NCBI GenBank assembly: GCA_021613535.1
Contig: CP075495.1
Coordinates: 13,826,001 to 13,890,000, forward strand
Direction of reading: 5' to 3'
DNA: 64,000 bases
Source of the DNA: Adineta vaga
Taxonomy: Eukaryota; Animalia; Rotifera
Shown here: piece by piece, positions 1 to 38,680 of the stretch
How positions within the stretch are numbered: position 1 is the first letter of the stretch
Layout of the letters: the number at the start of each line of letters is the position of its first letter
Translations under genes and position numbers: made by a program
The notes under the pieces: generated by a model
What the model saw: only the letters and a program-made list of their open reading frames with translations
Database searches by the model: none
What the model was told of the DNA's origin: nothing

Positions 1-91
1 GTTGTTTATCGAGCCATTTTTGTTTAAATGTTGTATGACGTCTATTAAGATCGTCAATTTCATTCTGTAAAGACGATATTGACAAAGTCAT
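1..91 (-). CDS. Possible 5' end of an unknown coiled-coil-like gene running off the window start
   Basis: ATG at 91 gives the open frame MTLSISSLQNEIDDLNRRHTTFKQKWLDKQ to the window edge; no homology recognised. Confidence 0.3.
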   Translation of the reverse strand, partial: MTLSISSLQNEIDDLNRRHTTFKQKWLDKQ

Positions 92-679
92 GATATATTT
101 TATGAGATTTGCATGATAAGAAACGATTGAATCAATAAATAACAACACTTATGATCATAAAGCGTTTATTAAAATTAAAAGAGATAGTTTCAACTTATTG
201 AATGAAGCCATTATGATATGTAAAAAATTAAACTCTACGAATACATGATATTTTCATTGGATGAATGAACCGACGACCACTGCCCTCTGGTGTAATGTTC
301 TTTGAGAAGAGACGAATGAGTATTTTGTCATTATATAAATATCGGATATTAGAACAATAAGAAAAGAGAAAAAGACTTACAATTCATCATAAAGTTAAGA
401 CGTGTTTGTTGTCGTTACGTTCGATATTCGAATATATTGAAATAGTAAAAAATAATACATTTGATTGATGATATCAATGTATCTACAAATCACTATGTTG
501 ATACTTCTAAGATACATATTCAAAACGATTGTTAAAATCTCCTATCACTGTTGATTATGCTATCAGTATGATTTCATCCGTTTTTGTTTTTCAATTATCA
601 GACATATATTTTGAATCAACAGCTTTATTACATTGAAACTCTTACATTTTTATATCTTTTATCAGTTGAGAGAAAAAAA

Positions 680-1207
680 CTACATGTTCAGATTTTTCTT
701 CGCTGTATATTGCACAATTGGTTTCGATCGTTTATGAAAGAGTAATTTTCGTTTAATAATACATTCAACTTGATAACTTGTACTATTTGTACTATTTGCT
801 GGTTGTTTACGCATTACTAATAAAGGTTTTTCCAATTCAACCATTTTCCCATCAAGAACATGTTGTCCAATGACGCATACAGGCATATCCTAAACAAAAC
901 CAATGTTTTTTCTTACTTTTAGTCGAGTTTCAATTATATTTACATTTTGTGTAAAAAATAAAAAGCCCAGACGTTCACCAGACAAAGTTTGTTTTTCCGC
1001 AGCATATTCCTAGATATGATGACAATACTCAATTCTTGATTGAAGAATAAAAATAGATAAGAAAGGAAGATGGACTTACTAAATTGCCTTGTAATTCCAC
1101 TAGAATTAATTCGGATGAATTTTCTCCTCTTTTAATCGAAAAAATCAACTTGTCAACGAATGAAAAACAATTGAATTTACTCACTGTTCGATTAATATTT
1201 GCACCAT
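680..1207 (-). CDS. CHTF8: Chromosome transmission fidelity protein 8 (Ctf18-RFC subunit), 4 exons
   Basis: Spliced product MVQILIE..SELILVELQGNL..LGFLF..PVCVIGQHVLDGKMVELEKPLLV..IIKRKLLFHKRSKPIV matches Ctf8 motifs; GT-AG introns of ~55 nt. Confidence 0.88.
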
Positions 1208-1422
1208 ATCTAAAAATTGATTATTCAAATTTCTTCTTAGACAAAACAAAATTATAGTTTTATTTTATTCCGGAAAAGGGGATATTTACACATTCAAATT
1301 ATTTGTGTTGAGAACAGAACAGCACAAACAGAAAATATACAGACACACACACACGTACATGAAAATTAGAGACAAACATCTGATTATTGCCATATATTTA
1401 TATAGAAAATGAACGATAAAAT

Positions 1423-3862
1423 TCATGTTTTTCGACGTTTACTTGAACGTAATGATGAATTATCAAGAGACGATCGTTTTCGATTGTCAAGTTTGATTGT
1501 AACAAGAGATGATTTTGTTGTATTCATTTTTCCAAGTTCATTATATAAACTAGGATCAGGTCTCATACGAATTGTCAATTTAGGTATAATTCTTCGTTGA
1601 GAGTTTTCATTTTGATTTTCATTCTTATTCATAATATTATCAGTATTTTCACTATCAGTTCTTGATGATAATGAACTGAAAGAAGATGTACTCGAATGAC
1701 GAAGTGAACGAATAGTTGGTCGCCAGATAAGAAAATTTGGATTATTAGAATGAATAGTTGTTGTTAATGAAGCTGATGAAGATGAATATTGTGAAATAGT
1801 TCGTTGGCGGCCACTAGCATATGTTCGGGAAGATGATGATGATGATGATGATGATGATGTAGATAAAGCAGGTGAAAGCAAACGAGATGAACGAGAAGGA
1901 TGTGTAGTTGTCTAATCGGAAGAATCAAAGTTATATGATACAAGATGAATTTTGACTTTACCTGTGAATGAGTCATATGTGATGTTGCTCTTGTTGTTTG
2001 TTTAGATGGTTTTGTAGATGAACGTGAATTTGAATTGGTACCATCGGAGAAAAATGCTGAATCGGAAGATGTAGTTGCAGCTGATGGTAATGCTGGTTGA
2101 TTACGAGAAATAGTAATGGGTGATTTTGATGATGATGAATGTGTACTACTTGGTCGTCGACGTGGAATAATTCCATTTAATGGTAGAGATTGAAAATTAA
2201 GACTGGTATTCATATTACTCGATTTTTTCTTTCGAATAGACTAAAACGAAAGGAAAAATGTTTTGATTCTAGAAATTGTGTACAACAAACTTACTATTTT
2301 CTTCTTTTTCTTTATATTCTCATCGCAAGTGACTGTCGTAGCCTAAATAGTATACAATAAATATAACTCTTAATATATATTCAATTGATATCTTAGTACT
2401 TACATCTATTGTGGCTTTGCTTTCACTATTTGGCGATCTAAATTGACCTGTTTTATTTCGACTAACTATTGTTGGTCGTTTTACTGATGTTGAAACACTG
2501 TCTATTTCGGATGATTTTTCTAAAATAAAAAACATACGATCTCTTTCTCTCATTTCTTCTTCGATTTTTATTTCAAATACTTACGTTTCTCTTCCATCAT
2601 TGCCTTACTATTATTTACCGAATAAATCTTGCGTAAACGTTTATCAGTTTGACGTAAACGTGTAGAAACAAGTATCGTTTTATTCGTTGATGGTTCATTT
2701 GTCGTAGATATTGCTGAAGATGACGCATCCGTATCTGCAGATGATTTCATTACTGATGAATTCTTGTGAGCAAATCCACCTTGATTAAGCCTAGAAAAGA
2801 TATTTTTAACAGATTAAATTATATCATCGATGATCTGAAAATGAAATTACATTTCACAACTACGACATTCACAAAGTGAATTATTATCACCAAAAAAATC
2901 CGATCCATAACTACAAGTGATTTCATCACCGATTTCAATTGGACGAAGAACATGAATATAAGCAGAACTTAAACCTGTTGCCACAAACTAGGAAAAGAAG
3001 ATGAATTCACATTTATCTAGTCAAAATAATCCTCAATTCTCTTACTTTACAATTAGCTCGACAATCATGATTAATATAAGCTAAATCAAAGAAAATTTCA
3101 TTGAAATATCTAACAAAATTTGTTATTCTATTCTATTCTTTACCTGCAGGTCCAAGCCATAGTTGTGAACATTTTTTTCGACAAGAATACATAACAGAAA
3201 AATCATTAACACCAGGCTTAAGAAAAGCTTGTTCTTCTTCAGGAGTCAATTCAGCGATACAACCAATTAACATTTCGATCTTATCATGGACTGCCCTGAA
3301 ATATATAACCAAATAATATGTATTTCTTTCCATAATTTTCATCGATATTTACCATGCTTTTGTTGCAACAACTTTTCCTCCACATTTTTCTGTTGAATAT
3401 CGAAAACATGGTAGAAGTGTAACCCCCGAATTTCCATTAAATAAATGAAGAAAGCGAAATAACTATTCAAAAGAAAAGCAAAATAATCATTCGAAATGAA
3501 ATTTTCTTATTTTTCAATGATTTACATGTTCTTTGAATCCAGTTATTTGCAATGAACTTTTTCTTGCAAGTAAATTCTCATACCATGTTCCGATAGATGT
3601 AATTTGATTGAAACATTTTTCATAATCTAAATGTTCTTGAAATTGTTCAATAGCTAATTTCCATTGCGGTAACAAACGACGATTTGCTCGAAAACGAATA
3701 TTCATCTTATGTGTTGTAAATCCAAACATACTATCAACAACAATCATTGTCGCTAGATCATCATTTTCACTAAATGAAAATGATTCATCGATTATATTCA
3801 TATAAAATATTTGTATATTCTCACCAAAGATCAGCGACTGCTCGAGGTATACCAGAATACAT
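1423..3862 (-). CDS. KMT5B: Histone H4K20 methyltransferase SUV4-20, multi-exon, with long S/T-rich C-terminal tail
   Basis: [18 protein letters not shown]-terminus; [21 protein letters not shown]|[42 protein letters not shown]/post-SET motifs across exons. Confidence 0.95.
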
Positions 3863-4544
3863 CGTTATAATCGAATCGAAATTAAGAATCTTTTATTAAT
3901 ATATATATATATATTTATTTATTTATATCATGCTACGATCAAGTATTATTCTTTTTGTGAAATTATCACAAAGAAAATAATTTTATATCAATATTTGACA
4001 TAATTAAATCTTAAAATAAAGAAAAAAAACATTCGCATTGAATTTAGAAAAAAAATAATAATGATACTATAAAAAAATGTTCATTGATTTTCTTTTCACA
4101 ATGAATGATATTGGTGCCAAACGAAAAAAAAAGCTCTTCTTTTGTTAGTTAATCATATATGTCTATGACCAATGCTGCTTGTTGATGAGTCATTTTATAT
4201 GTTTAACTCTCACTGACATCTACTCTTTCTCTCAATTTACAAAGAAATAATTACATTCATTGTTTTCTTCGATGAAATTTAAGATTGTTGAGCAAATCAA
4301 ATATGAAAATACTTTCTTTAGCATCTAAGAAAAAGAATATTGTTCATACATTATTGTTTTCATATTCGTATATCGAATAACATGAGGCAAGAAACTAGAA
4401 AGTATGATAATTGAATCGTTACTATCCAGAATAACATTTCAAATGTGTCACGTGTTAAATCAAAGAAAGAAATGACGAAAAGAAAAGTATCGAGACTATA
4501 TCTTCTTGTCTTTTGTGGAGTTTATTCTTTAACTCGAAAGAATC

Positions 4545-5809
4545 ATGTCGTATCATGTCGAAACAGATAATACAACAGGTCATAAATATATTGTCGATAT
4601 AAAACGTCGTCGAAGTATTTGTTCAATAGATGGATGTCTTTCACGAGCGCAACGAAATTCTTTCTGTGCAAAGTAATTCCATGAAATTGAAAAGTTTTAC
4701 TCACTCTATTTTTCTAGACATTTACAAACAACAGATAAGAAAAGAGTTTAGTTTCAGTTATTGCCTTCTGTTTCATCTAACTTTTTCGATTTAGTTAATG
4801 AATAAGAAAACTTCACATCAAAAGTTACAAACTAAAAAAGGTTTTGTCATGAAAAAGAAATCATCTCCAACTAATTCGCTTATTAATGTTGAACAAATCG
4901 TTTCGAAATTTCATAATGTAAGTATAGATCAAATTCTCATAGTTTTCCATTGACATTTTCGATCTTTTCATATGAGTTACCTGTTGAAATACAACTAAGT
5001 GCTGAAATCGATGATGATGATCTCAAATCTGAAAGTTCAATTGAATATGATTATACAAATACGATGCCAACTCCAATACCTAATCCTATTGAACATCGAC
5101 ATGTTTCAATTGCAACTATTTATCTACAAGATGAACAATGGGTAGGATAGATTTAATTGTTGTTTCTCTTGAAAGAAAAGAAAAAGAATCTTGTTTGTTT
5201 CATTTTTAGCATCAACTTGAATTATTTATTAAATATTTTTCATCTTTTGCTTCACTTTCAAATAATATGAATATTAATTCTTCTACAACACATTTACTTA
5301 TTGATGATTCGATGAATCCACTACGATGTATTTTTTCGAAAAAAATTTTTCAAGCAGTTGCTCGACATATTTACATTGTTTCAATTCGATGGATTGAAGA
5401 ATGTTTATTACGAAAGGAAATTATTGATGAAACACCATTTGAAATTCATGGTGATCATTCAATGTCAACAATGCATTTAACTCGTCGTTGTTTAACAAAA
5501 CCTTTATTTTCTTCATCAATTTCATTTGCTATTGATTGTACATCATTTCAACGAACAATTACACGAAATGAATTAGCTGAATTAGCTGTTCTTAGTGGTG
5601 CAACATTGTTTGATCCTGAACAACAAATGTTGAGTCAATATCAACCAAAACTTCTTCTTGTTCTTGTTGATCCAAATGTGGATCGTTCGCGATTAGTAAA
5701 TCAATATCAACCATGGCGTTTGAATGTAAAATTTCTTACGCCAGGATATCTGTTAAAATCAATTATTTATCAAAACCAACAACCATTTGAAGATTTTGAA
5801 CTCGTTTAG
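4545..5809 (+). CDS. Small protein with an N-terminal C-x4-C-x9-C-x2-H knuckle and C-terminal BRCA1/BARD1-like BRCT repeats, ~5 exons
   Basis: Exon 1 encodes ..CSIDGCLSRAQRNSFCAK|H. The last exon, THLLID..LRCIFSKKIFQAVARHIYIVSIRWIEECL..DETPFEIHGD, resembles BRCA1 BRCT1 and is followed by a second BRCT-like unit (ELAELAVLSGA..YLLKSI). Confidence 0.75.
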
Positions 5810-6842
5810 ATTGTTTTTCTCTATATATATTTCGTTTTTTTGCAAATATATACGGAAATTTTGTTGAATTATACTTGTTATTATATCTACTCAATGATCA
5901 TTATGAGCAAGAGATTATGTAAGATTCGTTCTTTTTTCATTTACTCTTCGTTATATATAGATGTATCGATTGAATGAAGGATAAAATTGAATATATGAAT
6001 GATGATAGAAGTATTGATTATAAAGACGAGCAAGTCTTCTCAATGAAAATAGATTGGGATATTAGATTAAATATTTTCGAGGACAAACAGTATATGAATA
6101 TTCAAAAAACTTATTTACCAATCTTATTCTATCTTGTCTAAAGCATAGATGAGAATTCGATTTAGACATATCAAACTTGGCAATATAAAATGACCTTTAA
6201 TGACTAGAATGAAAACAATTAGTCATGCGAAAAGAACAAAGAGTATATTTCTCTGACGTTATTACAAAATTAATCGACGATATTCTTTTCCCTTTCTATG
6301 TTATATGACGTTCATGAATCAACAGAAAGAAACAAAAGAAAGTTTCAAAATTCATGTAAATGTTTATCTGACTTTATTTCTATATAGTAATAATATCACG
6401 AGAAAGATTTCGAAATCTAAAGATATTGCAAGAGATTTTCTCTTCTTCTTCTTCTATCTATTTGACCAAGATATATCTTACTAAAGAATTGTACTGTTGA
6501 CTAGTAAGTATTTGTTTCGATTCGAATTCTCTTTTTGTTTTGTAAAGAAGAAGTAGTAGTAGTAGTAGTAGTAAAAGAAGAAATGCTAATCTAAATATGA
6601 TTAGGAATAGTCAATCTTCTCACACACAAAGTGTTCCGTCTTTCGTTTACTGTTCTCTGTGTGTTGTGTGATGAGCGAGAGAAGAAAAAAAAGAAGATGG
6701 TTTTAGAGATTCGACAAAATGAAGAAGGAAAAAAAACGGATCAAAGCAGCACACATACATACACACGCATATAGATATATACACTTACACTCATTTAAAC
6801 ATTCGAACATACACACAGAAAGAAAGAAAGAAAGAAATATTT

Positions 6843-8697
6843 TTAACATTTTTTAGTCAAACTCTTTTCCGCCGCTATTTTTTTCAATTGTTTCAAACGT
6901 TTTTCATAATCCAAACCAGTTGGTCTTTTAGTATTGTTATTAGTAGTTGATGAGGGTGAATTACTTCCTGAACTATTACTGCCGGAACTATTTAAACGAT
7001 TATACGTTGGAGTTGTTGCAGTTGGAGGAGATTTTAATACAGAAGTTTGTCGACCGATTGGTGTCGGTGAACTAATTCGTGGGAAAGACTTGGTTGAAGG
7101 CAATAATTTCTGTGTAGATTTTGAAGATGATAATTGTGGTTTTAATACAGGTGGTGATGATGGTATATTAGGTTTTGATGATGAATTAGTACTTTTTATT
7201 GATCCTGTATTACTATTAGCTGCTGTCGTCGTCGTCGTCGTCGTCGTCGTAGTGGTTGTAGTAGTAGAAGTACCATTGATTGATTGTTTTAACAGAGGAT
7301 TTAATGATGTTGTAGTTAAAGATTTTGGTGATGGAGGTGAACGTTTTATATTAAGATTACTATTACTGGATGAAGTCAATGTATTTAAATCAGCTAGGAT
7401 TGACGATGCTGATGTATTAGAGGATTCTTGTATGCTCTTTTTTTCTTTAAATCCAGTAGCTAATGATGCCCAACCATTTGTATTTTTAGTAGTTGTACCA
7501 TTAGATAAGGAAGAATTTGAATTGGACGACAATGGATTACTGCTTATTGTAATATCTGATGTGATCGATTCTGATGACTGAAAAAGTATAAAATTATACA
7601 GTATGACATGAAAAGATGAATAGTTAAAATTTACTTTTGGCTTGAATGAAAAAAATGGACTTGTAACATCTGTAATTGAAGTTGATAAACCTTTCTTTCC
7701 AGTAGATAAGGTTGACTCTGTTGGTTTTGATTTGGAATTTGATACAGATAGATTACTATTTGTTTTTGTTTCTTTGATCGATGATTGAGATTGTTGCTAC
7801 AATGAAAATTAATATTTATAATTTTTTTCTTTGAAGAAAATTTTCAATACATACTCTTTTATTAATCATTTTTCGACATTTTGAACAATACCATAGACAC
7901 CGTGGATCACTTATATCAGCAGTACTAACAGATGGTTTATGGCATTTTTGATGGTACTTCGCTTGACATTCATGACATTCAACTAAGCGATTATCTTTTT
8001 CTTCAGTTAATACCCTACAAGTATTTGAAAACTAAAATCAATATCAATTAAATCTCTTTTCATAATACTTACATGCATTTATTGCAAACAAGACCTAATT
8101 CAATAGCAAATTCATCCATATCTCGAGATGTTGATGTTGATGGATTTGATTGAGATTCTGATGGTTTAGTTTTTGTTTCATCGCTATCATTTTCATCATC
8201 ATATATATCATCATCTTTGTCGTTTGTAGTCACTTTTTCTTCAATTGGACTTTTTTTCTTCTTAGTACTTTCATCATCTTCTTTTATTGTCACAGATTTT
8301 AAACGTTTTGTAGGCGGTGGTTTCGAATTGGTTGATAATGGTGCTGAACGCTTTTTCTAAGCAAATAGAAAGAGAATTGTTTTTCCTTTTTCTCAACAAC
8401 AAATGAATACTTACAGGTAATGGTTGAGGTGATTTAGAGCCTGATAATATTTCGGATTTTGAATCTGACGAAGTCGACTCAGGAGAACGCTACAAAGATA
8501 TTCGAAAAACAATGAAATTGCTTATGAAAATATCTATGTAAAAAACGAACCTTTGGTGAATTATTTGTTTGCTTATTTTCATTAATAAGTTCATCAATTA
8601 ATAATTCGAATTGTTCGGCCATATCCGATGGATTTGCTAGAAAAATCGAAAGTGTTCGTTGTAGATAATCAAACTGTTTTATTGGTAATAAATCCAT
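6843..8697 (-). CDS. INTS12: Integrator complex subunit 12 (PHD finger), multi-exon
   Basis: DEFAIELGLVCNKC..NRLVECHECQAKYHQKCHKP..DPRCLWYCSKC PHD finger; C-terminal EKRLKQLKKIAAEK; S/T-rich linker. Confidence 0.9.
7225..7266. repeat. (GTC)n/(GTA)n trinucleotide tract encoding poly-Thr in INTS12
   Basis: Seen directly in the sequence. Confidence 0.85.
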
Positions 8698-28344: not shown

Positions 28345-29215
28345 GTTCTTGGTTACAAGATAAAAAAATCATAGATCGAGAAAAACGAAAAAGATTTTTC
28401 CTTTCTTTAAAAAAAAGTATGTTTCCGACAGCTTATTACAGAAATCCCACCTCAATTTTTAGCCGAAAAAGGAGATTTCCGATAAAAACCATATAATTTC
28501 TGACAGTTCTGAAGACGGGTTACCTTCCTATGTATTTATGTTAATTTTGAAATTTCTGACGAAAATTGATTTTTCTCGAGTGGAACTTAATGCACAAATA
28601 TTTGATGAAAAATGTTTAAACTGAATAAATTCTTCAAATAAAAAAGTGTTATCTTCAATGAAAAAAGCTTTTTTAAAAGAAAGTTTTGTCAAATTTCGAA
28701 AATAAATTTGGCAATAATCGATTATTCATTCATTTTCACTCTACAATGATCAACTGAATTTAGAATGTGAACAAGTTATATATCGATATAACAGAAGAAG
28801 ATTTTCTTTTTCTAAAACCGAGACAATATAAGTCTATCTTATGAAATAAGTTAATATAGATCTTCCTATAAAAATGATCTGCATAGATGATTTCACTATT
28901 TCTATATTCTCTCCAATTACCTTGATCTATTAAACAGTAATGTTTCTCCAAGCAAAATTGAAAAGGAAATTCTTTGTGAAGATCAATATAGGCGCGGTTA
29001 TGTATATAATAATGATGTTTTTCACATTGACCATCAATATAAAAAAGATACGTTAATATGATATTGAAGATAAAATAAATTGTTCTTATCGATGATCATC
29101 TAAATATGTTTGATCGCATTGTGTAGCTACACATCAAAAGTTGAATTTCCAAGGAAAAATAAGAAAGACAATATTTATTTGAAACAATTCTATTTTACAT
29201 TGTAAAAAAAAGGAT

Positions 29216-30057
29216 ATTATTCAACAATATTTAATTGTATTTAGTCAAATAAAGTATACGATAACAATAGTCGTATTTAATCCGAAAACCAGAATAAATA
29301 TCCGACAATTCGAACACTTTTATTTTACCCATTGTTTCATTGAACCAGTTTTCATTTCCATATAATAAATAGTTTGATTCAAACCAATTAAAATTCTTTT
29401 TTTTTCTGTCACATTCACAATCAAGACCATAACTAGCTAATGCATAAAAATAACCTTGTACAATTTTTTCTACATCACGACCCTCACTACAACATTCATT
29501 ATAATATGATAAATATTCCTGATTCTTGTCCAATTTAATACGACATACAATTTCATAGATTCCAGCCAATATTGATTCAAATTTCCCTTTTATACCAACT
29601 AGAAAAACAGATTGAACACTATATAAGCGAACACATCGACCTGTTAAACTATTGAGATCATATTCATGCTTGGGACATAATTTGTTAGTGCATTTTAAAT
29701 GATCTAATGAACAACGTAAACCCATTTCAAACAAATCAACAGCTAATAAACGTTTAGAATCAATAAAATAAAAATAAATTAATTTGTAGAATAAGATATT
29801 ACAAATATTTTCTTGATTTAAATATTTATTTCTTTTAAAATAATATTCAAAGAATTCTTCGATTGTAAGAGCCATTTTTAATTCATTTGTACGTGGACAT
29901 GATTTTTGCTTAATTATACTTTTATAAGCTAAATAACCATCACTATTATCTTTACTATTTAACATATTTAGTAACCAAACAATACACACATTAATATTTC
30001 CATGCTTTCGAAAAGATTTTCCAAATTTTTTTTATCTGTATTCGTACGATATAAAAC
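29216..30057 (-). pseudogene. 3' half of an F-box/PP2-like (phloem protein 2 lectin-like) gene, disrupted
   Basis: RCVRLYSVQSVFLVGIKGKFESILAGIYEIVCRIKL..WFNETMGKIKV..LFD*IQLNIVE resembles PP2 domains; frameshift in an A8 run (~30030) and frameshift plus stop near the end. Confidence 0.55.
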
Positions 30058-30355
30058 ACAAGTAACGCTCATCCGTAGGATTCGCTGACCCCTCTCTGAA
30101 AGAACTATAATGATGATTAACGCATCTATATTCTTTAAAAAACTCTCTTAAAGAGAAGAAACACTCGTCAAAATTTCTTTTCTTGATTTCATGTTTTGAT
30201 TTTGTTCAGCATCATTGAAAACCTCGGGATCCAAATTTTAGCGCCTCTGGTTGAACGAATAAAGAATACATCAAATTTACTGACAACCACTCCCGAAACT
30301 ATTTTGAGATTTGTCAAAAAATATGCTCAGAAATCGAGATTTATTTAGACTCTAA

Positions 30356-30602
30356 CCCAGGTCGACCAATCGGATACTCGAATCCGATCGGATCCAACAT
30401 AGCATACTATAGTTTCCAAAAAACGGATTTCGACGGATCCGACAGGTGGCCATAAGACCACAATAAAATATAGCTAAAGAGAACGCTCATAAAATTTGCA
30501 GCTTCCGACGGAAATTCTACTGACGGAATCCGATAGGATTTTGTCGGAACGTTGGATCCTATAAGGTCCTATCGGATCCAATATCAGATTTGTCGACCTG
30601 GG
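30356..30602. mobile_element. MITE with CCCAGGTCGAC terminal inverted repeats and TAA on both flanks
   Basis: taa|cccaggtcgaccaatcggata ... tatcagatttgtcgacctggg|taa; internal GGATCC/TCGGA subrepeats. Confidence 0.75.
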
Positions 30603-30767
30603 TAAGAGCTTTATAAAATTATTCGTTTAATAGACTAAAAGATACAGCATCGAAAACTGAACAAAATCCTCTATTTAGATATTCTTTCTGTGGACCGATC
30701 GGTACTAGTCGAACATTAAAAATACGTAAATATGATAAACAGAATAATATTAATTGTTTTTATCTAT

Positions 30768-33030
30768 CCCCTGAAAGAAAAAAAGGAGTATTCCAAAACC
30801 TTTTTTGGTTCTGCAACACCTCTAGAACCAGAAAAAGTTCTGTATGACATATGAGAAACCAAGAAAGGTTCTGGGCAACTATTCTGAACTACAAACGATT
30901 TTGTCCGACAATTCTAAACTATGAAAAGTTCTGTCAGTCATCCCTCAAACTACAGAAGGTTTAGTTATTTTGCTACTGAACCTTAAAAACTCCTTCGAAC
31001 CATGTAAGCTTATGAACAGGCTTGTAAGAAACCGAAATGGTTCTGCCTATTAAATCCCGAACCGTAAAAAGTTCTGTTTTATTTATTTTGAACCAAAAGG
31101 GTTCTACCCAAAAATACTCAGTTTGAAAGGGATCGGTCTGATAATATGAATTATAGAGATTTTTTCCTTCGATGTTACTAAATGTAAAGTTTCTTTTCTA
31201 AAATCCGCAACCTGATATAGCTGTCCCAGTGAATGTTGGAGTATCGTAAGTTTCCTCAACTGAAGAAGAGAGTCACACACTCAAAAATGTATATACGTTC
31301 GTTTGTTCATGCAAGTCAATAACAATTCAACAACTTTCTTTTCTCTTTGGAGTTTTGTCATAATAAAAAACGGAAATGCTTTGGCCATTTCAAGTTGTCA
31401 ATAACGATCTTAGGTATGAACTGAACAACTTAATGTTTTGCATCGACGATGGTGGGAGTCCACTATCAGTATATGATTATTCCAAGCAATTTTTCAGTCA
31501 TCCAAATCTGAGGGAGGTTTTTCTCTTATTACTTACATGTAACAAAATCATGTTCAGGCCAGTTACAAGTTAACAGAGAACGACTCTAATATAGCTCAAA
31601 CTAACTTATATGTTATGTCAACAATAGAGGGTAGGAGTTGATCAGCTCAAATCCATGAACTCTGATGAAATGAACTAAAGAACTATTCAAAAGTTTATCA
31701 TTTCGCCGAGCCCAATCTTTTGAAAATATTCTTTACAAATAAAATGATCTTTTTCAGCGGTTCCTCTATTCGATTATGTAGAGATATCACGTAGTCATCA
31801 ATTGATAGTATGTAGGGGTATTTGTATACCCTTGAGCATAGAAGATATCTTTATATAATGAGACTAGCATGCAGGGACGGGCTGAGGATTTTATAATAGC
31901 CGAAAATTTAACTTCAAAGCATGGGTCCCGCATGAAACTTATGAAAGATGATAAGTGACCCAAATGGTGAGTTTTTACCACAAACATTTAGTGATTGAAG
32001 TTTGCGAAACAAAATTCTTTTAATTGCTACACCCAATTTTTGTTTTTGGTTTAAGCAGTACTCAGATTCTTAGAATGTTATCGGAATCTACATCGAATTT
32101 CATCCACAGATTACAAGTCTTTCAGAAGCTATCAAGAGATATATTCAATACGACTTGTTCAATCCCTCTTTCTATTCGGACAGCTTTCGAAACTAAATAT
32201 CATATGAAATATTTCTTATTGTTGTATAGGTACATATCGATATCTGATTAAGAGTAAGTAATATTTCAAATAAGAAATGAAACATTCTCTATTATCATTT
32301 AGGTTTGTATAGATATGTGGGTAAAAATGAGTTATTTTCAAAACAATATGTTAAATATTTATTGTTATTATTTCGGTTCTTTGCCATATCTGATTAAAGT
32401 TGAGTGATATTTTGGATTTTAGATTAAATATTTTCTATTGTCATTTAGATTCAGATCGAAGTCTAACGAAATGTTAGTTATATTTTATATAGAAAACTAA
32501 ATATTTTCTTCTTTTATATTTAAACCGATCTATATTGCAGAGAAATGGTAAGTGGGATATTAGAAACAAAATAAGTAGAATGATTTTCTTTTTATATCTA
32601 GGTTGATTTGTACACGTATTCAAGTACTGCAAGTGCGTCTGTTTATATTACAAGGTCAAAAACAGACTGAGAAAGTGAATTAGGTTAGGGCTGAATTGAG
32701 CCAATTGGCAGAAAGCAAAAAGCGTGATTCGACTGTAGCTTAATTCAGTTTTTCGGTCTATTTGAGAGCTTAACATAAACAGACGCACTTGCAACACTGG
32801 AATATGTGTACAAATCAACCTAGATATAAAGAGAAAATAATTTGCTGAAAAACCATTTAACACACCTTTTATGTCAGACTGAACCTTATTTTTGTATAGA
32901 ATAATAAAGAGTTCTGTTAGGTTTTAACAGAACCCTCTATGAGCCAGAACCTTTTTGTGGGTTTCTGAGTTTTACCAGCGGGCCGAACCCCCAAAAAGGT
33001 TCTGGAAAACTTCTTTTTTATTTTCAGAGT
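30768..33030. mobile_element. Non-autonomous CACTA/EnSpm-like element (~2.3 kb) with subterminal GAACC/GGTTC repeats
   Basis: Left ctgaaagaaaaaaaggagtattccaaaaccttttttggttc versus reverse complement of the right end ctgaaaataaaaaagaagttttccagaacctttttggggttc; many GAACC motifs near both ends. Confidence 0.6.
32584..32837. repeat. Foldback inverted repeat with ~67-bp arms
   Basis: 32584-32650 is the near reverse complement of 32770-32837 (tatatctaggttgatttgtacac..gcaagtgcgtctgtttat). Confidence 0.85.
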
Positions 33031-35470
33031 TGGCTTTCATGCATCTAATATCTGATGCGATGAAAAAAATTTAAATAGAAGGAAAATGATTGATAAAAAT
33101 TGTCCAAAAATATCAACTGCTTCGGATTTGAATTTAAAAGATGCATATGTCAAATTAATCAACATCATGTCATATAAATTTGGTTGTGTAGGACCATATT
33201 GACATAATAAATTTGCTGATAAATAACGAAATTATGGAACATACGATAATAAACAAATCAATCGATTACAATATATTGAATTATCAACGAGTAAATGATG
33301 CTTTAAACAAATATTACCTTCAAAGACAATGATCAAAAAAGATTAGAACACTTATGATAATTAAATGAAAATAGAGTTGCTCTAATAAATTACTGCTTGT
33401 CTATAAATAAGAAACAAAATGAATAGAAATATAGATGAGATTTACGGAATGTTCATTTTTAATTTTGTTCTCATTTCGTAAGTCTAAATATGGAATTTTT
33501 TTTATCTCTTTTGCCATGAAAGTAGAAAAGAAAAACTTCTTTTACGCAAGACATCAACATTATTATTTGTTTTCATTAGAATTTAAAACATTGAAAAAAG
33601 AACGAACAATCATATACTCTATAATTTTGGTCAAAATGTATATGTTTTCTGATAGAAGAGAAAGCTTTTATCTGGAAACATCAAGTATTAAAAAATAAAG
33701 AAAAAGAGTTTATTGAATTTTTTGTATGGATTCAATAGTTATTTACCTAATTATGACAATGGATAATATTCGTTTAAAATCGATTATTTTAAAATTTACA
33801 AGCTCGTCTTTCAAATGACGTTTGATAATGTCTTCATTTTCATCTTGGTTATGATGCAACAGTCGTTTGGATTCTCATTGTTTGGATGCTGTGAAATTGT
33901 TCAAAGGTTATAGGTAACTATTATACGAATTCGATATTTTTTACAAATATATTTAGAGCATTGCAATCGAAATTGATTGAATCAGACCAAGCAAAGTTTA
34001 TCATTAATTTTTTTATCTCTTTTCGACTAATGTTCGATATTATTTGTTAATTCATGTCAGATATAATCCTATCTTTGTTAAAATACCAATATTATATGAA
34101 AGAAAATTTCCATTTAGTGTAAATATGACAATTATATACTTCATCAATATATTCATAGTCAACAAGTCAGTGATCAATATGCCATTGGTTCAATGAAACA
34201 AATGTCATGATACATGCGTCGATGGTATATTTTAGAAGAATGTTCATCACAATCGATGAATTCAGAAAGGCAGTTCACATTGATTTCTCAAATAAACAAA
34301 ACCGTCATATTAGATAAAGAAACTATTTTGGATGTACATTCAACAACTAAATGTTCAGTATCATGTGTAATTATTTGAATGCACAGCATGAAAAACTTCG
34401 ATAGATCTAGTATAGTCGGTTTCATCGACACCGATGATGAATATATTCAAAATGAAATAAGTGTAAACTCAAGACAGAACGACTTTATCACTCGCGAATT
34501 AATCATACTCTTGTAATTCTCAGAATGATAATGAATAGGAAGGGACTATAAGTACGTGTCACTATGTAAACATGAAACACTCTTTGTGTTTACAAATGCA
34601 TTTCGCCGTCTTTAATTGAAGCTCGAATATATCGGAAGTTGCATCCAGATGCGATTTATATCCTAAAATGTGTCTCCCAACATTAGTTAGTTGAGACTGA
34701 GATACACTCTTTTCTCTAAAACTTTCTTTTTTATCTTGAAAGATGTACGAATACAAAACATCTTTCTATCATTAGACATCAAACGTCAAATCAAAGAAGC
34801 AACTAAATAAAGTTGTCAAACTCGTCATCCACTTTATCGTGACGTCAACCCCAACTCTCTAACGTTACAAATATAGTAACGATTTGTGAGGCACTCAGAG
34901 TTTAAACTAAACTCTCTATTATGAGAAATATTCAAAATCAAGTTAAAAAAATATTTTGCTACGTTTTCATGCACAACAGAATGTTTAAGAAATGATTTTC
35001 CAGTCGTTCCCAATAGATCACCGATGGGAATAAGTCCAGCGGACCCATTCAAAGGCTCATAAGACGCATCGACGGTCGTCCTTCTTCTTCATAACCTTTC
35101 CACTATTGAAAATTTTTCAGAAGACATTATATTACGAGCAGACAGTTTCACAAAATATCATATGATACCCATCAAACTTCAATTGATAAACTATAGTGCA
35201 TTTCAAACACGGGATTTCGCTATCTCGGATATACACAAATCACCAACTTAGACGATAAACACATCTCTCACGGTCGAACATCAAGAGCTTACAACAATAC
35301 ACGTTATTGTACCATAAATACGACTTAGAAGCACACTGTGTATTGATTTGTCACCACATCGGTTTCCTCTGAAAAAATTCTCCAGAAAAGAGCACTAAAG
35401 CGCAATGTCCATCGAGTCCAAACTAGAACGTCAACCTATTTCCAAAAGTATTTCGGAGATACTTTCTTTG

Positions 35471-36607
35471 TTAGTAGCCCATTTGAATGCCTCGGAGATC
35501 CAGTGTGGTGAGTGTCTATAGAGGAGAGAGAGAGCATGGATGTGTCAATTAGGACAAGAGCGAACGAGTATTACCGTGTTTATTTGCAAGGCATCACCAA
35601 TATGTCGTGCTCCTTGATGGCCGATATCATTGTTCTCGAGATTTAGTGTGGTGAGTGTCTATAGAGGAGAGAGAGGATGGGTGTGTCAATTAGGACAAGA
35701 GCGAATGAGTATTACTGTGTTTATTCGCACGGCATCACCAATATGTTGTGCTCCTTGATGGTCGATTTGATTGTACTGGAGATCTAGTGTGGTGAGTGTC
35801 TATGTATAGAATATTCCTTTCGAGAATGTGGGTAAAGTAATTTGAACTTTAGAGTAAGGTTTTTCAAATAGATATAGGATTATACAAGAGGTGTTGCGGT
35901 AGTGTGTGAAAGTGTTCGATCCGGGTTCATGGAGTGAAAAGAGAAATCGTTGCTTGTCTGATTATTACTGAGTTAATGTTGTAATCGTCGGATGAGTAGA
36001 GTGAGTGCTGTACTGAAGGTAGTGATACTTGTTTATTTCGAATGGTTTTGGATTGTTATTTTTAGACTTGGTTTGCGAAAGATCGTATTGAGTCGGGGCA
36101 GAATATAAAACAATTCACTTTATTTTATTCAGTGGGTTTCAAAGATAGTTGTTGCATTGTCTAAGGGTTGCAATAGTGACATTTGTTGGAAACGGGAAAG
36201 GTGTTTTAATGCTGCGGTTTTATTCTTGTGCGGCACAGGACTGCACGTTTAATAAGATATATATTCTATGGGCATAGATAGTAAAGAACAGGCGAGAGGA
36301 TGGGTTGTTTTAATAGCATGAGTCAATGTTGTGTTTGGTTGACTCGTGGAATTTGCTTCGGAATTGTGAAATTTGTTTTTTCTTTGAGTAAACTGATTAA
36401 GTTAGATGTTGCGAGGCTCATGTGTGTTTGAACAGATGAGAAAATAGGTAAAGCACTTCGCAAACTTACTTGATATCGATGATAAATGTTCAGAATTTGA
36501 TTAAAACGTTGGCAAACATTTTGCATTGAACAAAATAGTGTAAAACCAGACAGATGATCCAAAATTCGATAGACGAGTTCAATTGGTAATGTTGAAAATG
36601 TGTACAT
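35471..36607 (-). CDS. F-box plus RI/NLRC3-like leucine-rich repeat protein; possibly truncated by TAA in exon 4
   Basis: F-box FSTLPIELVYRILDHL..VCQRFNQIL; two complete 84-nt exons TLTTLDLQYNQIDHQGAQHIGDAVRINT and TLTTLNLENNDIGHQGARHIGDALQINT; a third repeat begins then stops. Confidence 0.8.
35478..35802. repeat. Tandem exon+intron repeat, period 141-143 bp
   Basis: gtggtgagtgtctat recurs at ~35505, 35648 and 35789; the intervening introns are nearly identical. Confidence 0.9.
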
Positions 36608-37528
36608 ATTCGCTTAAAATTCCACAAACGTTTGTTGAGAATACAAGCTATTGAATATATTTTGTTTGTTATGAAAAGAAATTCGCTTTGCTGATAGTAT
36701 TGTATTTTTGTTATTCGAAAAAGATAATGAAATCTGACGATTTCAACAAAAGCGAATAGTTCGTTTATGCAGAAAGATGGCGTTAACGTATGTATTGAGT
36801 GGAGTTTCGTTTGACGTGTATGATTATCAGTGGCAGTATACAGTCAAGATACGTATTTTTCCTTAGTAGTTTTTTGAGTTTTACAAAAGAGTTCGTTTTA
36901 AGAAAGAATATTTTTGCGCGTGATATTCAACAAAAGTTTAATCAGAAAAAGAAATCTTTGAGGGTAGATACCGATAGTCTCTACTTTTCAGGCTCACGCT
37001 CCATACCCTCATAAACTAATTTCATTCTATTAGTTCGACGTAAGGCAATTTTTATTTCAAATACGTCTATCCTTAAAGATCTTAACACGAAAATGAACTG
37101 AATTGAAGAAAACAAAGCCGGTTCATCTTATCGTGATGTGTGAGATAAATTTCTTGTATGAACAGTTGGTGGTGTATAAAATATTCTCAAAAGCAAAAGA
37201 AAACACATGAAAGTATAAACTAAGTTCGAGTCTGACTCTCAGCGAGTTAACTGAGACTGTTGCATGTCTATGCCATCGTATCTCTAAGATGTTCTTATAT
37301 GATTTGCTTATTCCCCTACGTTTTTCATTGATTCCAATAGTGTTCAAACTAGACAAATTTTACTGTACTTTATTTTTCTCAAACCTGCTACGGATTCGAT
37401 TCTACCTATGTGCTCATTTATTGAATTATCATCTCTAGAATGATCAATAGTTTCTATTTCAATATTACTAAACTTTTAATGATTTTATGAATAAATAATG
37501 ACCGACTGATTGTAATCTCATATTATAT

Positions 37529-37980
37529 CTATCGAAAGCGCGTACTTAGCTCGTACTGAAGGGTATAGCAATATTTTGATCTTGTGCAGCCTTTAACTTT
37601 TAACCCTTGATCCTTCACATTGACCCCACCTATCATCCTACCCTTAATCTGCTCTCGGTTTCCGATGTTTAAGACAGTCTTGAAGAAAATGGTTTTTTGA
37701 CCTTTGACACTGATACAAAAGCGCACAGAAACTTTTTTCCATATGACGCTCCTTTCTGTGGAAGGAATAAGGTATAGGTGTAAGTGTTCCTTGACAGAGT
37801 ACGCACATACGTACATCCACACAAGGAGAAAAGACCGATCTTGGATCCTCATAGTTCCTGCGATCACACAGTTCATGATGACCAATGATAACCCATGAGG
37901 GTCCGAAAGTTTGATAGGATTTGGGTATACAGGATCCGCTTTTTCCCCCTTGCAGACTCACGCCCTCAAATTCTACTGAA
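37529..37980. mobile_element. Possible second HINE/DINE-1-like interspersed element
   Basis: Locally higher GC; gtac..gtac mini-hairpin followed by gaagggtata; (cata/cgta) microsatellite; overlapping spurious ORFs. Confidence 0.35.
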
Positions 37981-38461
37981 AAAACATTTCTTCAATGAAC
38001 CCAGTAGCTTTATTAAATAATTCACAGTCAGAATTTTTCTTTTATGCTTAATAACAGGTTATTTTCGGTTTCGCAATAATTATAGTAATTGATTAGAATT
38101 ATGAAAAGCTAATATCAGATTTGCAATCCTGGACTTCGATTACTTTTGGGTAAATCATATAAAGATGATTATTAGTAAATTTTCATGAATTTTTATATTG
38201 CTGCAAGCTGACTGGATTAGACAAATAAGAAATAATAATTAATTAATTATGGTTCATAGAAAAATATTTTTGGGAAAGGAACCCAAGATTCGTATTCCTC
38301 GATCTTGATTACATATGACGAATCGTTGTCCGATGACCGGGGGCAAGTTTTCATCGATTTATACGCTGCTTTCACCTGATTGGCTTGGACAAACAAACAA
38401 ACTTTAAGCATTTTAACGACCCTATTTAAGAAGCATATAACCCTTTCTTTGAGAAAAGGGA

Positions 38462-38680
38462 ATAATCAGAATTTTTCTTGTTATTAAATATTTCACGTAC
38501 ATATCCTTGATACAATTTAAATCCAAAATGACTTTTAATCAATATCTTCCAAAAATAATTATCATTTTCAATTAAAATATAAAAGTGTTTGCATGTTTTC
38601 GATAAGTTCAGAATATCAATAAAAGATAAATATTTACATAAATTATATAAAACATGTTCAGGAAGATTAATTATAGACAT
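38462..38680 (-). pseudogene. 5' (F-box) half of the split F-box/PP2-like gene
   Basis: MSIINLPEHVLYNLCKYLSFIDILNLSKTCKHFYILIENDNYFWKILI is an F-box; the frame runs into the repeat hairpin right after NSDY. Confidence 0.7.

Follow-up and report, generated by a model that had tools for sequence, protein, structure and literature searches.

Is the F-box gene between positions 29,216 and 38,680 of our window, the whole 64,000-nt stretch analysed here (Adineta vaga, contig CP075495.1, positions 13,826,001 to 13,890,000), split by a mobile element, and if so, what kind of element is it and what does it carry? The original prediction, made from the letters alone, was that an F-box/PP2-like gene had been cleanly divided by an 8.4-kb Helentron-like insertion, and that the insertion had brought a second F-box gene, with leucine-rich repeats (LRRs), into the locus as a step in the shuffling of SCF substrate adaptors. 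Its observations are confirmed in part, and its interpretation is partly supported. Our own reading, to which we give a probability of about 0.85, is that a single-exon F-box/PP2 gene was struck by a non-autonomous rolling-circle transposon with Helitron2/Helentron-type ends and a standing F-box/LRR passenger. The genome examined comprises 100.8 Mb in six contigs (positions on these carry the prefix C) at about 30% GC. The parts of the locus on which the argument rests are the following.

38462..38680, minus strand: 5′ half of the host gene, with start codon, F-box and linker, ending ...NSDY (Pfam F-box match; alignment to paralog L002).
30058..38461, minus strand in its own 5′ to 3′ direction: 8,404-bp non-autonomous Helitron-like element (matches in other copies span base 1 to base 8404).
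29231..30057, minus strand: 3′ half of the host gene, VLYRT..., a frameshift in a run of eight A, and a PP2-like domain to the stop (alignment to L002).

An F-box (PF00646, E = 5.5e-10 in a Pfam profile search) lies in the open reading frame (ORF) 38719-38426 on the minus strand; read from the ATG at 38680, this frame runs ...YVREIFNNKKNSDY and closes with ...NNKKNSDY at 38462. As predicted, the frame stops where a terminal hairpin starts, and this hairpin (CCCTTT...AAAGGG) is real, with a z score of -2.1. The minus strand resumes at 30057 with VLYRTNTDKK, and a single slip of 1 nt in the run of eight A at 30033-30026 leads into a 252-aa ORF (29989-29231), also as foreseen. This frameshift, which shows no indel in the read contigs of two independent runs, is a lesion separate from the insertion and lies 25 nt downstream of it.

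Four paralogs in the same genome, found by searching with each half separately, hold both halves in a single open frame of 329-343 aa.

C6:12693447-12694385, C6:7363899-7364831, C5:13002375-13003199 and C2:4426469-4427104: both-halves paralogs, frame uninterrupted.

The closest of them, L002, lies on another chromosome and has a 329-aa frame, itself without the first part of the F-box. With the two halves aligned to it as separate pieces, its residues 5-50 are 72% identical to the F-box half in the window and its residues 57-310 are 54% identical to the C-terminal half. The paralog reads straight across the join, both in protein (...EKNSDYVLYRTDKDKEKF...) and in DNA (...CCGATTAT|GTTTTATATCGTAC..., in longer excerpts ...AAAAATTCCGATTAT|GTTTTATATCGTAC... 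and ...AAAAATTCCGATTAT|GTTTTATATCGTACAGA...), and at the join the window's left flank ...AAAAATTCTGATTAT followed directly by its right flank GTTTTATATCGTACGAA... equals the L002 DNA nucleotide for nucleotide. On these alignments we take 38680-38462 and 30057-29231 to be two halves of one gene. L002 shows, by the same comparison, what the site would have looked like when empty: a paralogous empty site, into which 30058-38461 was inserted without target duplication and without loss of host bases. The predicted NSDY|VLYRT join without a target-site duplication (TSD) thereby finds its counterpart in an intact gene. Interrupted and frameshifted by 1 nt, the host gene is now a pseudogene. In C6:12686614-12698811 (L002-L004) the closest paralog has further PP2-like fragments around it, one of which contains a stop, and the stretch resembles a small tandem array of F-box/PP2 copies in decay.

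The name PP2-like needs some care. The PP2-like ORF of the window had no Pfam match of its own in the profile search, and the interrupted copy and its closest paralog are both too diverged for a direct PF14299 match. The ORF does align to residues 155-321 of paralog L006 (E = 9.6e-11) and also to L008. L006 has a PF14299 PP2 domain at residues 213-340 (E = 1.3e-12) together with an F-box (E = 6.4e-10), and L008 matches PF14299 at E = 1e-4. An F-box followed by PP2 in one protein is thus found in the host family, in L006, whereas the window copy matches the F-box alone directly; the predicted label stands for the family and would apply to the window copy by transitivity through L006 and L008 only.

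The insertion is one of many. A search of the genome with the 8.4-kb query returned many copies, 92-96% identical and colinear over the full span of bases 1 to 8404, at least nine of them near-full in one search; eight copies fetched together with their surroundings have sharp junctions and unrelated flanks. With up to 2 mismatches allowed, the 21-nt 5′ end matches the genome 119 times (control: once), and with up to 1 mismatch the 17-nt 3′ end (GGATGAGCGTTACTTGT) does so 91 times (control: none). Paired with each other, these end probes define at least 20 long copies, with ends 8.4-11.4 kb apart, and dozens of short non-autonomous members with ends 0.7-2.4 kb apart, of which the three that were fetched each had both ends. 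The check proposed with the original prediction, that both ends should recur together elsewhere, in short HINE-like elements and in long ones bearing the same cargo, thus succeeded genome-wide. With multiple copies, identical ends, unrelated flanks, an empty site and no transposase of its own, the family has what characterizes a non-autonomous transposon family, and the disruption of the gene is in itself an ordinary transposon event.

The copies differ pairwise by 3-5% in a star-like pattern, and the window copy has 1.7% private changes; this divergence points to an old burst rather than a fresh insertion. Outside the LRR region diversity is flat at 0.03-0.06, with no conserved segment other than the cargo. 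No copy has a match to PF14214 or PF05970, the eight copies contain no ORF longer than 150 aa, and ten ORFs of the element are without a Pfam match. Three further observations concern the structure of the copies. One long cargo copy (C5:15671079-15679977, minus strand) appears nested in a short element of the same superfamily in opposite orientation (C5:15670254-15680195). In the 3′ part of the window element, 30339-30619 has 43-nt inverted arms, exceeds the single-copy flank 40- to 100-fold in contig depth and offers fewer alignable columns between copies; it is probably a nested high-copy miniature inverted-repeat transposable element. At 32579-32842, two 72-nt arms, 90% complementary and 120 nt apart, are found in every copy of the element.

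What kind of transposon this is has to be read from its ends.

38441..38461, minus strand: 5′ terminus, a T followed by the 5′ asymmetric terminal inverted repeat (TIR), folding as a hairpin (TCCCTTTTCTCAAAGAAAGGG) (genome end matches; DNA fold).
30089..30104, minus strand: the 5′ end repeated in inverted orientation (TTCTTTCAGAGAGGGG), subterminal, 31 nt short of the 3′ terminus (junction alignments).
30058..30088, minus strand: 3′ terminal segment, with the conserved last 13 nt GAGCGTTACTTGT and a weak hairpin of 4 bp at 30081-30071 (genome end matches).

On the minus strand of the window the element starts T|TCCCTTTTCTGAAAGAAAGGG at 38461 and closes TCAGCGAATCCTACGGATGAGCGTTACTTGT. Its 5′ TIR, CCCTTTTCTGAAAGAA, begins at base 2 and folds as a hairpin, in keeping with Helitron2, where the repeat lies 0-2 bp from the 5′ end; DNA folding against shuffles gave z = -2.1 for the window copy, as mentioned, and z = -2.65 for a short relative, with fold energies of -4.2 to -5.5 kcal/mol. 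The two copies of the TIR match in inverted orientation at 14 of 17 positions in the window element and perfectly (TTCTTTCAGAAAAGGG) in the short relatives L044-L046 and at C2:81289. Canonical Helitrons (Helitron1) insert between A and T, run 5′-TC...CTRR-3′ and carry a hairpin roughly 11 nt before their 3′ terminus; the window element starts with TC but ends CTTG(T), and has in addition the 5′ hairpin and the TIR.

The direction of the element agrees with that of its relatives. The genome contains elements with Helitron_like_N and PIF1 domains, mostly near chromosome ends, and in four fetched loci the sequence ...GAGCGTTACT(T/A)GT lies 1.2-5 kb downstream of the PIF1 helicase on the coding strand; in two colinear Rep-PIF1 copies it is the exact point where homology stops. 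The last 13 nt of the window element are common to these Rep-PIF1 elements. The ...GAGCGTTACTTGT end at 30058 is the 3′ end, and in the relatives it is found downstream of Rep-PIF1 on the coding strand. The original prediction had taken this end, with its ACAAG and hairpin (a 4-bp stem, z +0.4), for the 5′ end, and the labels have to be reversed. The subterminal microsatellite that it also listed is absent from the vicinity of both ends, and TRF finds in the element only a 141-nt array that belongs to the cargo.

Rep copies with 3′ ends GGATGAGC(G/C)TTACTTGT are found at C2:32651-40701, C2:212081-220116, C2:227521-235571 and C2:81289-93000, and the C2:81289 copy has the same inverted repeat and tail as the window family. 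An accessory OTU protease is common, though not required, in autonomous Helentrons; upstream of Rep at about C2:92-93 kb, two neighbouring ORF pieces resemble successive stretches of the OTU profile, with E values (0.026 and 0.038) that miss the cut-off. Between the helicase and the 3′ end of an OTU-Rep-PIF1 element stands a 589-aa open frame that belongs to no Pfam family (L034:4802-6568, minus strand, equal to C2:82802-84568). A second and larger genome-wide set of 3′ ends, ...CGACGAGCGTTACTTGT, has the same 13 terminal nt, preceded by a 7-bp hairpin, and Rep-PIF1 copies, C2:322141 for example, are among its members.

The AP endonuclease of Helentrons (Exo_endo_phos) was not found in the Rep/PIF1 elements with the same 3′ 13 nt, and C2:78-98 kb has no PF03372 match. 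A true Helentron does exist in the genome, with Rep, PIF1 and AP endonuclease in one 1860-aa open frame (C1:18044017-18048174, minus strand), and the listed 3′ termini of the window type include none in its neighbourhood. At C1:18049862, just past the start of this frame and on the other strand, the cargo family has an exact 5′ terminus. A Rep-helicase-AP endonuclease partner with the same termini, by which Helentrons in the strict sense and their HINE derivatives are recognized (PMC4067079), is thus not among what we found. Of the predicted Helentron-derived HINE/DINE-1 nature, the part that stands is a single mobile element without TSD and with Helitron2/Helentron-type ends, and the part that does not is the partner bearing an AP endonuclease. 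On its termini we would class the element as Helitron-like with HLE2-type ends, short of membership in the Helentrons proper.

Since the element encodes no Rep/helicase, a Rep-helicase would have to be supplied in trans and would copy the element in by rolling circle; the likeliest source would be the genome's own OTU-Rep-PIF1 elements, which have these 13 terminal nt. Integration took place directly after a T of TTAT, without duplication of the target and without loss of host bases. There is no TSD at the window site, where one T may be assigned to either side (TTAT^G or TTA^TG). In at least 70 of 74 copies the base before the element is a T, usually as part of a TTAT, the base after the element is unbiased and the element's own last base is T; in the alternative register, shifted by 1 nt, an A precedes the junction T in 22 of 32 exact-match copies. 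Read contigs of four runs were compared with 29100-30600, two of these runs, from related organisms, having little or nothing of the host gene. In each run 8 contigs stop at 30058 and go on into differing flanks. In two runs there are paired contigs of similar depth, 2-5 bases apart, at 29183-29322 and 29859-29994, which suggests two haplotypes (allelic variants) of the 3′ half of the broken gene.

Several points weigh against an insertion of this kind. The empty site has a single T and not the TT usually quoted for Helentrons. The 3′ hairpin, with its 4-bp stem, is no better than shuffles, where the Rep-bearing relatives have a 7-bp stem in the same place. No bridging or empty-site contig was found among the reads, but contigs break at the repeat edge, so that the lack of one does not speak against an empty allele. 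Finally, no autonomous element with both window ends was found, and the 5′ end of the Rep-bearing relatives could not be delimited: two such copies are colinear only from within a coding repeat, and one candidate place has no recognisable 5′ terminus.

The alternative that survives best, although we consider it improbable, is that the likeness to a Helitron is superficial and the element comes from a different TSD-less class, as a Crypton, a Spy-like cut-and-paste element or a product of recombination. The absence of a Rep/Hel of its own would fit such an origin, as would the 3′ end CTTG(T) in place of CTRR and the weak 3′ hairpin, and TSD-less cut-and-paste elements do exist (PMC4122938). It is opposed by the asymmetry of the inverted repeat, terminal at the 5′ end and 31 nt inside at the 3′ end, which is a Helitron2 signature and not a symmetric TIR, by the last 13 nt that are shared, on the same strand and downstream of the helicase, with the Helitron_like_N and PIF1 elements at four loci, and by certain short members of the family that end with the canonical CTAG|T. 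We thus favor a rolling-circle transposon, and turn to its passenger.

36470..36607, minus strand: cargo exon 1, F-box (46 aa), followed by a GTAAGT donor (PF00646, E = 1.3e-4).
35799-35716 and 35658-35575, minus strand: cargo LRR exons, 28 aa each (LRR_6, E = 3e-4 and 1e-3).
35515-35471, minus strand: last, partial cargo exon, with the stop.

The second F-box gene predicted within the insertion is thus borne out by profile matches to both of its parts. An F-box followed by LRRs, in a gene that is open and predicted to be spliceable, is the arrangement of an F-box/LRR protein (FBXL-like, with RI-type LRRs). The repeat unit of the gene is an 84-nt exon bounded by AG and GT, encoding one 28-aa RI-type LRR, plus a 57-nt intron, and exon and intron together make up the 141-nt tandem array found by TRF. 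The window copy has two full LRR exons and the other seven copies have from 1 to 10. Outside the elements, the nearest relative in hand is an F-box/LRR gene at about C3:706 kb, whose F-box exon is 63% identical.

The F-box exon is open in all eight copies and has a ratio of non-synonymous to synonymous substitution rates (dN/dS) of 0.24; its variants comprise 9 synonymous and 8 non-synonymous changes, where 78% non-synonymous would be expected (p = 0.004). All 41 LRR exons are bounded by AG and GT and open: random substitution at the observed density would put a stop in 7.9 of them, and not one of 2000 simulations left all the exons free of stops. For the framework codons of the LRRs dN/dS is 0.49, and diversity at codons 8, 9 and 11 is 3-4 times that of the linked adjacent intron. 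These codon patterns show a maintained gene under purifying selection, with a fast-changing predicted binding face. With at least 20 long copies in the genome, and with the gene in each copy examined, we read the F-box-LRR gene as a fixed part of the family and not as a one-off capture. The transposon thus probably spreads an SCF-adaptor gene that is both diversifying and functional.

This bears directly on the proposal that a rolling-circle element moved an F-box-LRR gene into another F-box locus as a special event, which does not hold up: the cargo is constant in the long copies, and none of the seven other copies has a match to an F-box/PP2 gene in its flanks (about 350 bp per side), where there is mostly no long open frame. 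We infer that the landing of the window copy in another F-box gene is a coincidence. The further suggestion that the insertion is a step in transposon-driven shuffling of SCF adaptors, making a new chimeric F-box gene at the locus, we regard as very improbable. Host and cargo genes are co-oriented, and since the host F-box ORF contains a GTACGT in phase 0 (38500-38495) and the LRR exons of the cargo are also phase 0, one can conceive of a splice that would make a chimera; against this, the PP2 half is severed from the rest of the host gene and frameshifted, the cargo has an F-box exon of its own, the flanks of the other copies are as just described, and there is no sign of domain shuffling. 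Least credible of all is that the 8.4 kb are a very long intron or an "intronised" transposon in an F-box/PP2 gene that still works. In its favor, both host halves are still without stop codons and element and gene have the same orientation; against it, the boundaries are TC...GT and not GT...AG, all four paralogs are intronless at the join, the independent frameshift in the run of eight A is unchanged in contigs of two runs, and the same 8.4 kb are found at no fewer than 20 unrelated sites.

The value of the locus is that a nucleotide-exact empty site fixes the true ends and the target of a mobile family, and that some 20 or more copies of a hypervariable F-box/LRR gene under selection travel with the family so defined. 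We tentatively raise the possibility that the element is a dedicated vehicle for a functional and fast-diversifying F-box/LRR adaptor, which builds and scatters a variable "recognise-and-ubiquitinate" repertoire. If this were true, the repertoire could serve the host, in an immune-like recognition, or the element, by tagging defence proteins of the host for degradation, in the manner of viral F-box proteins, and co-oriented insertions in other F-box genes could occasionally yield chimeric adaptors. Bdelloid rotifers are asexual, with few transposons and greatly expanded gene families (PMC3846280), and a clear case of full-gene carriage in such an animal would show how large "recognition" gene families multiply. 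In the literature searched, the coverage of which is incomplete, we found no paper describing a Helitron-type family with F-box/LRR cargo. We point out that the locus offers a testable system, in which the binding of the cargo to SKP1, the targets of the cargo and the mobilising Rep can all be addressed.

How does this compare with known systems? Proteins that combine an F-box with PP2 (PF00646 and PF14299) are best known from plants. The host family resembles them in its N-terminal F-box and C-terminal PP2 lectin-like domain, and differs in being from a rotifer, an animal.

The element is most like the non-autonomous elements of the Helitron2/HLE2 type (PMC3627910; HELIANO, PMC11417382), with which it has in common a 5′ T start and a TIR 1 nt from the end that folds as a hairpin. 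As in these elements (PMC3627910), the 3′ TIR is subterminal, just upstream of the tail, insertion is after T and without TSD, and the ends are common to long and short non-autonomous members; unlike them, the 3′ hairpin has only 4 bp, the 3′ TIR lies at 31 nt, against 20-30 nt quoted, and the single empty site is T^G rather than T^T. With the Helentron-derived HINEs and DINE-1 (PMC4067079) the family shares palindromic subterminal inverted repeats, a T at both boundaries, a short 3′ palindrome 8-35 nt from the end (13 nt in the window element), internal tandem repeats and many short derivatives. It differs from them in its length of 8.4-11 kb, far above that of typical HINEs, in having no microsatellite, in carrying an intact and, by prediction, spliced gene, and in that the Rep elements with its 3′ end are without AP endonuclease.

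Gene captures by Helitrons are mostly of fragments, and full-length capture has been called "exceptionally rare" (PMC6431247). The gene-capturing Helitrons of maize, bats and fungi (PMC6431247) are alike in that a rolling-circle element carries and multiplies host-derived coding sequence, whereas the cargo described here keeps its start, predicted splice sites and stop in each copy examined and appears to be under purifying plus diversifying selection. The closest precedent from the same kind of organism is the Penelope-mediated expansion of host gene families in Adineta vaga, including an LRR gene (PMC3846280). There, too, intron-containing host genes were multiplied by transposon machinery, but with the terminal repeats of a retroelement and with TSDs, where the family described here is of the DNA rolling-circle type and inserts without TSD.

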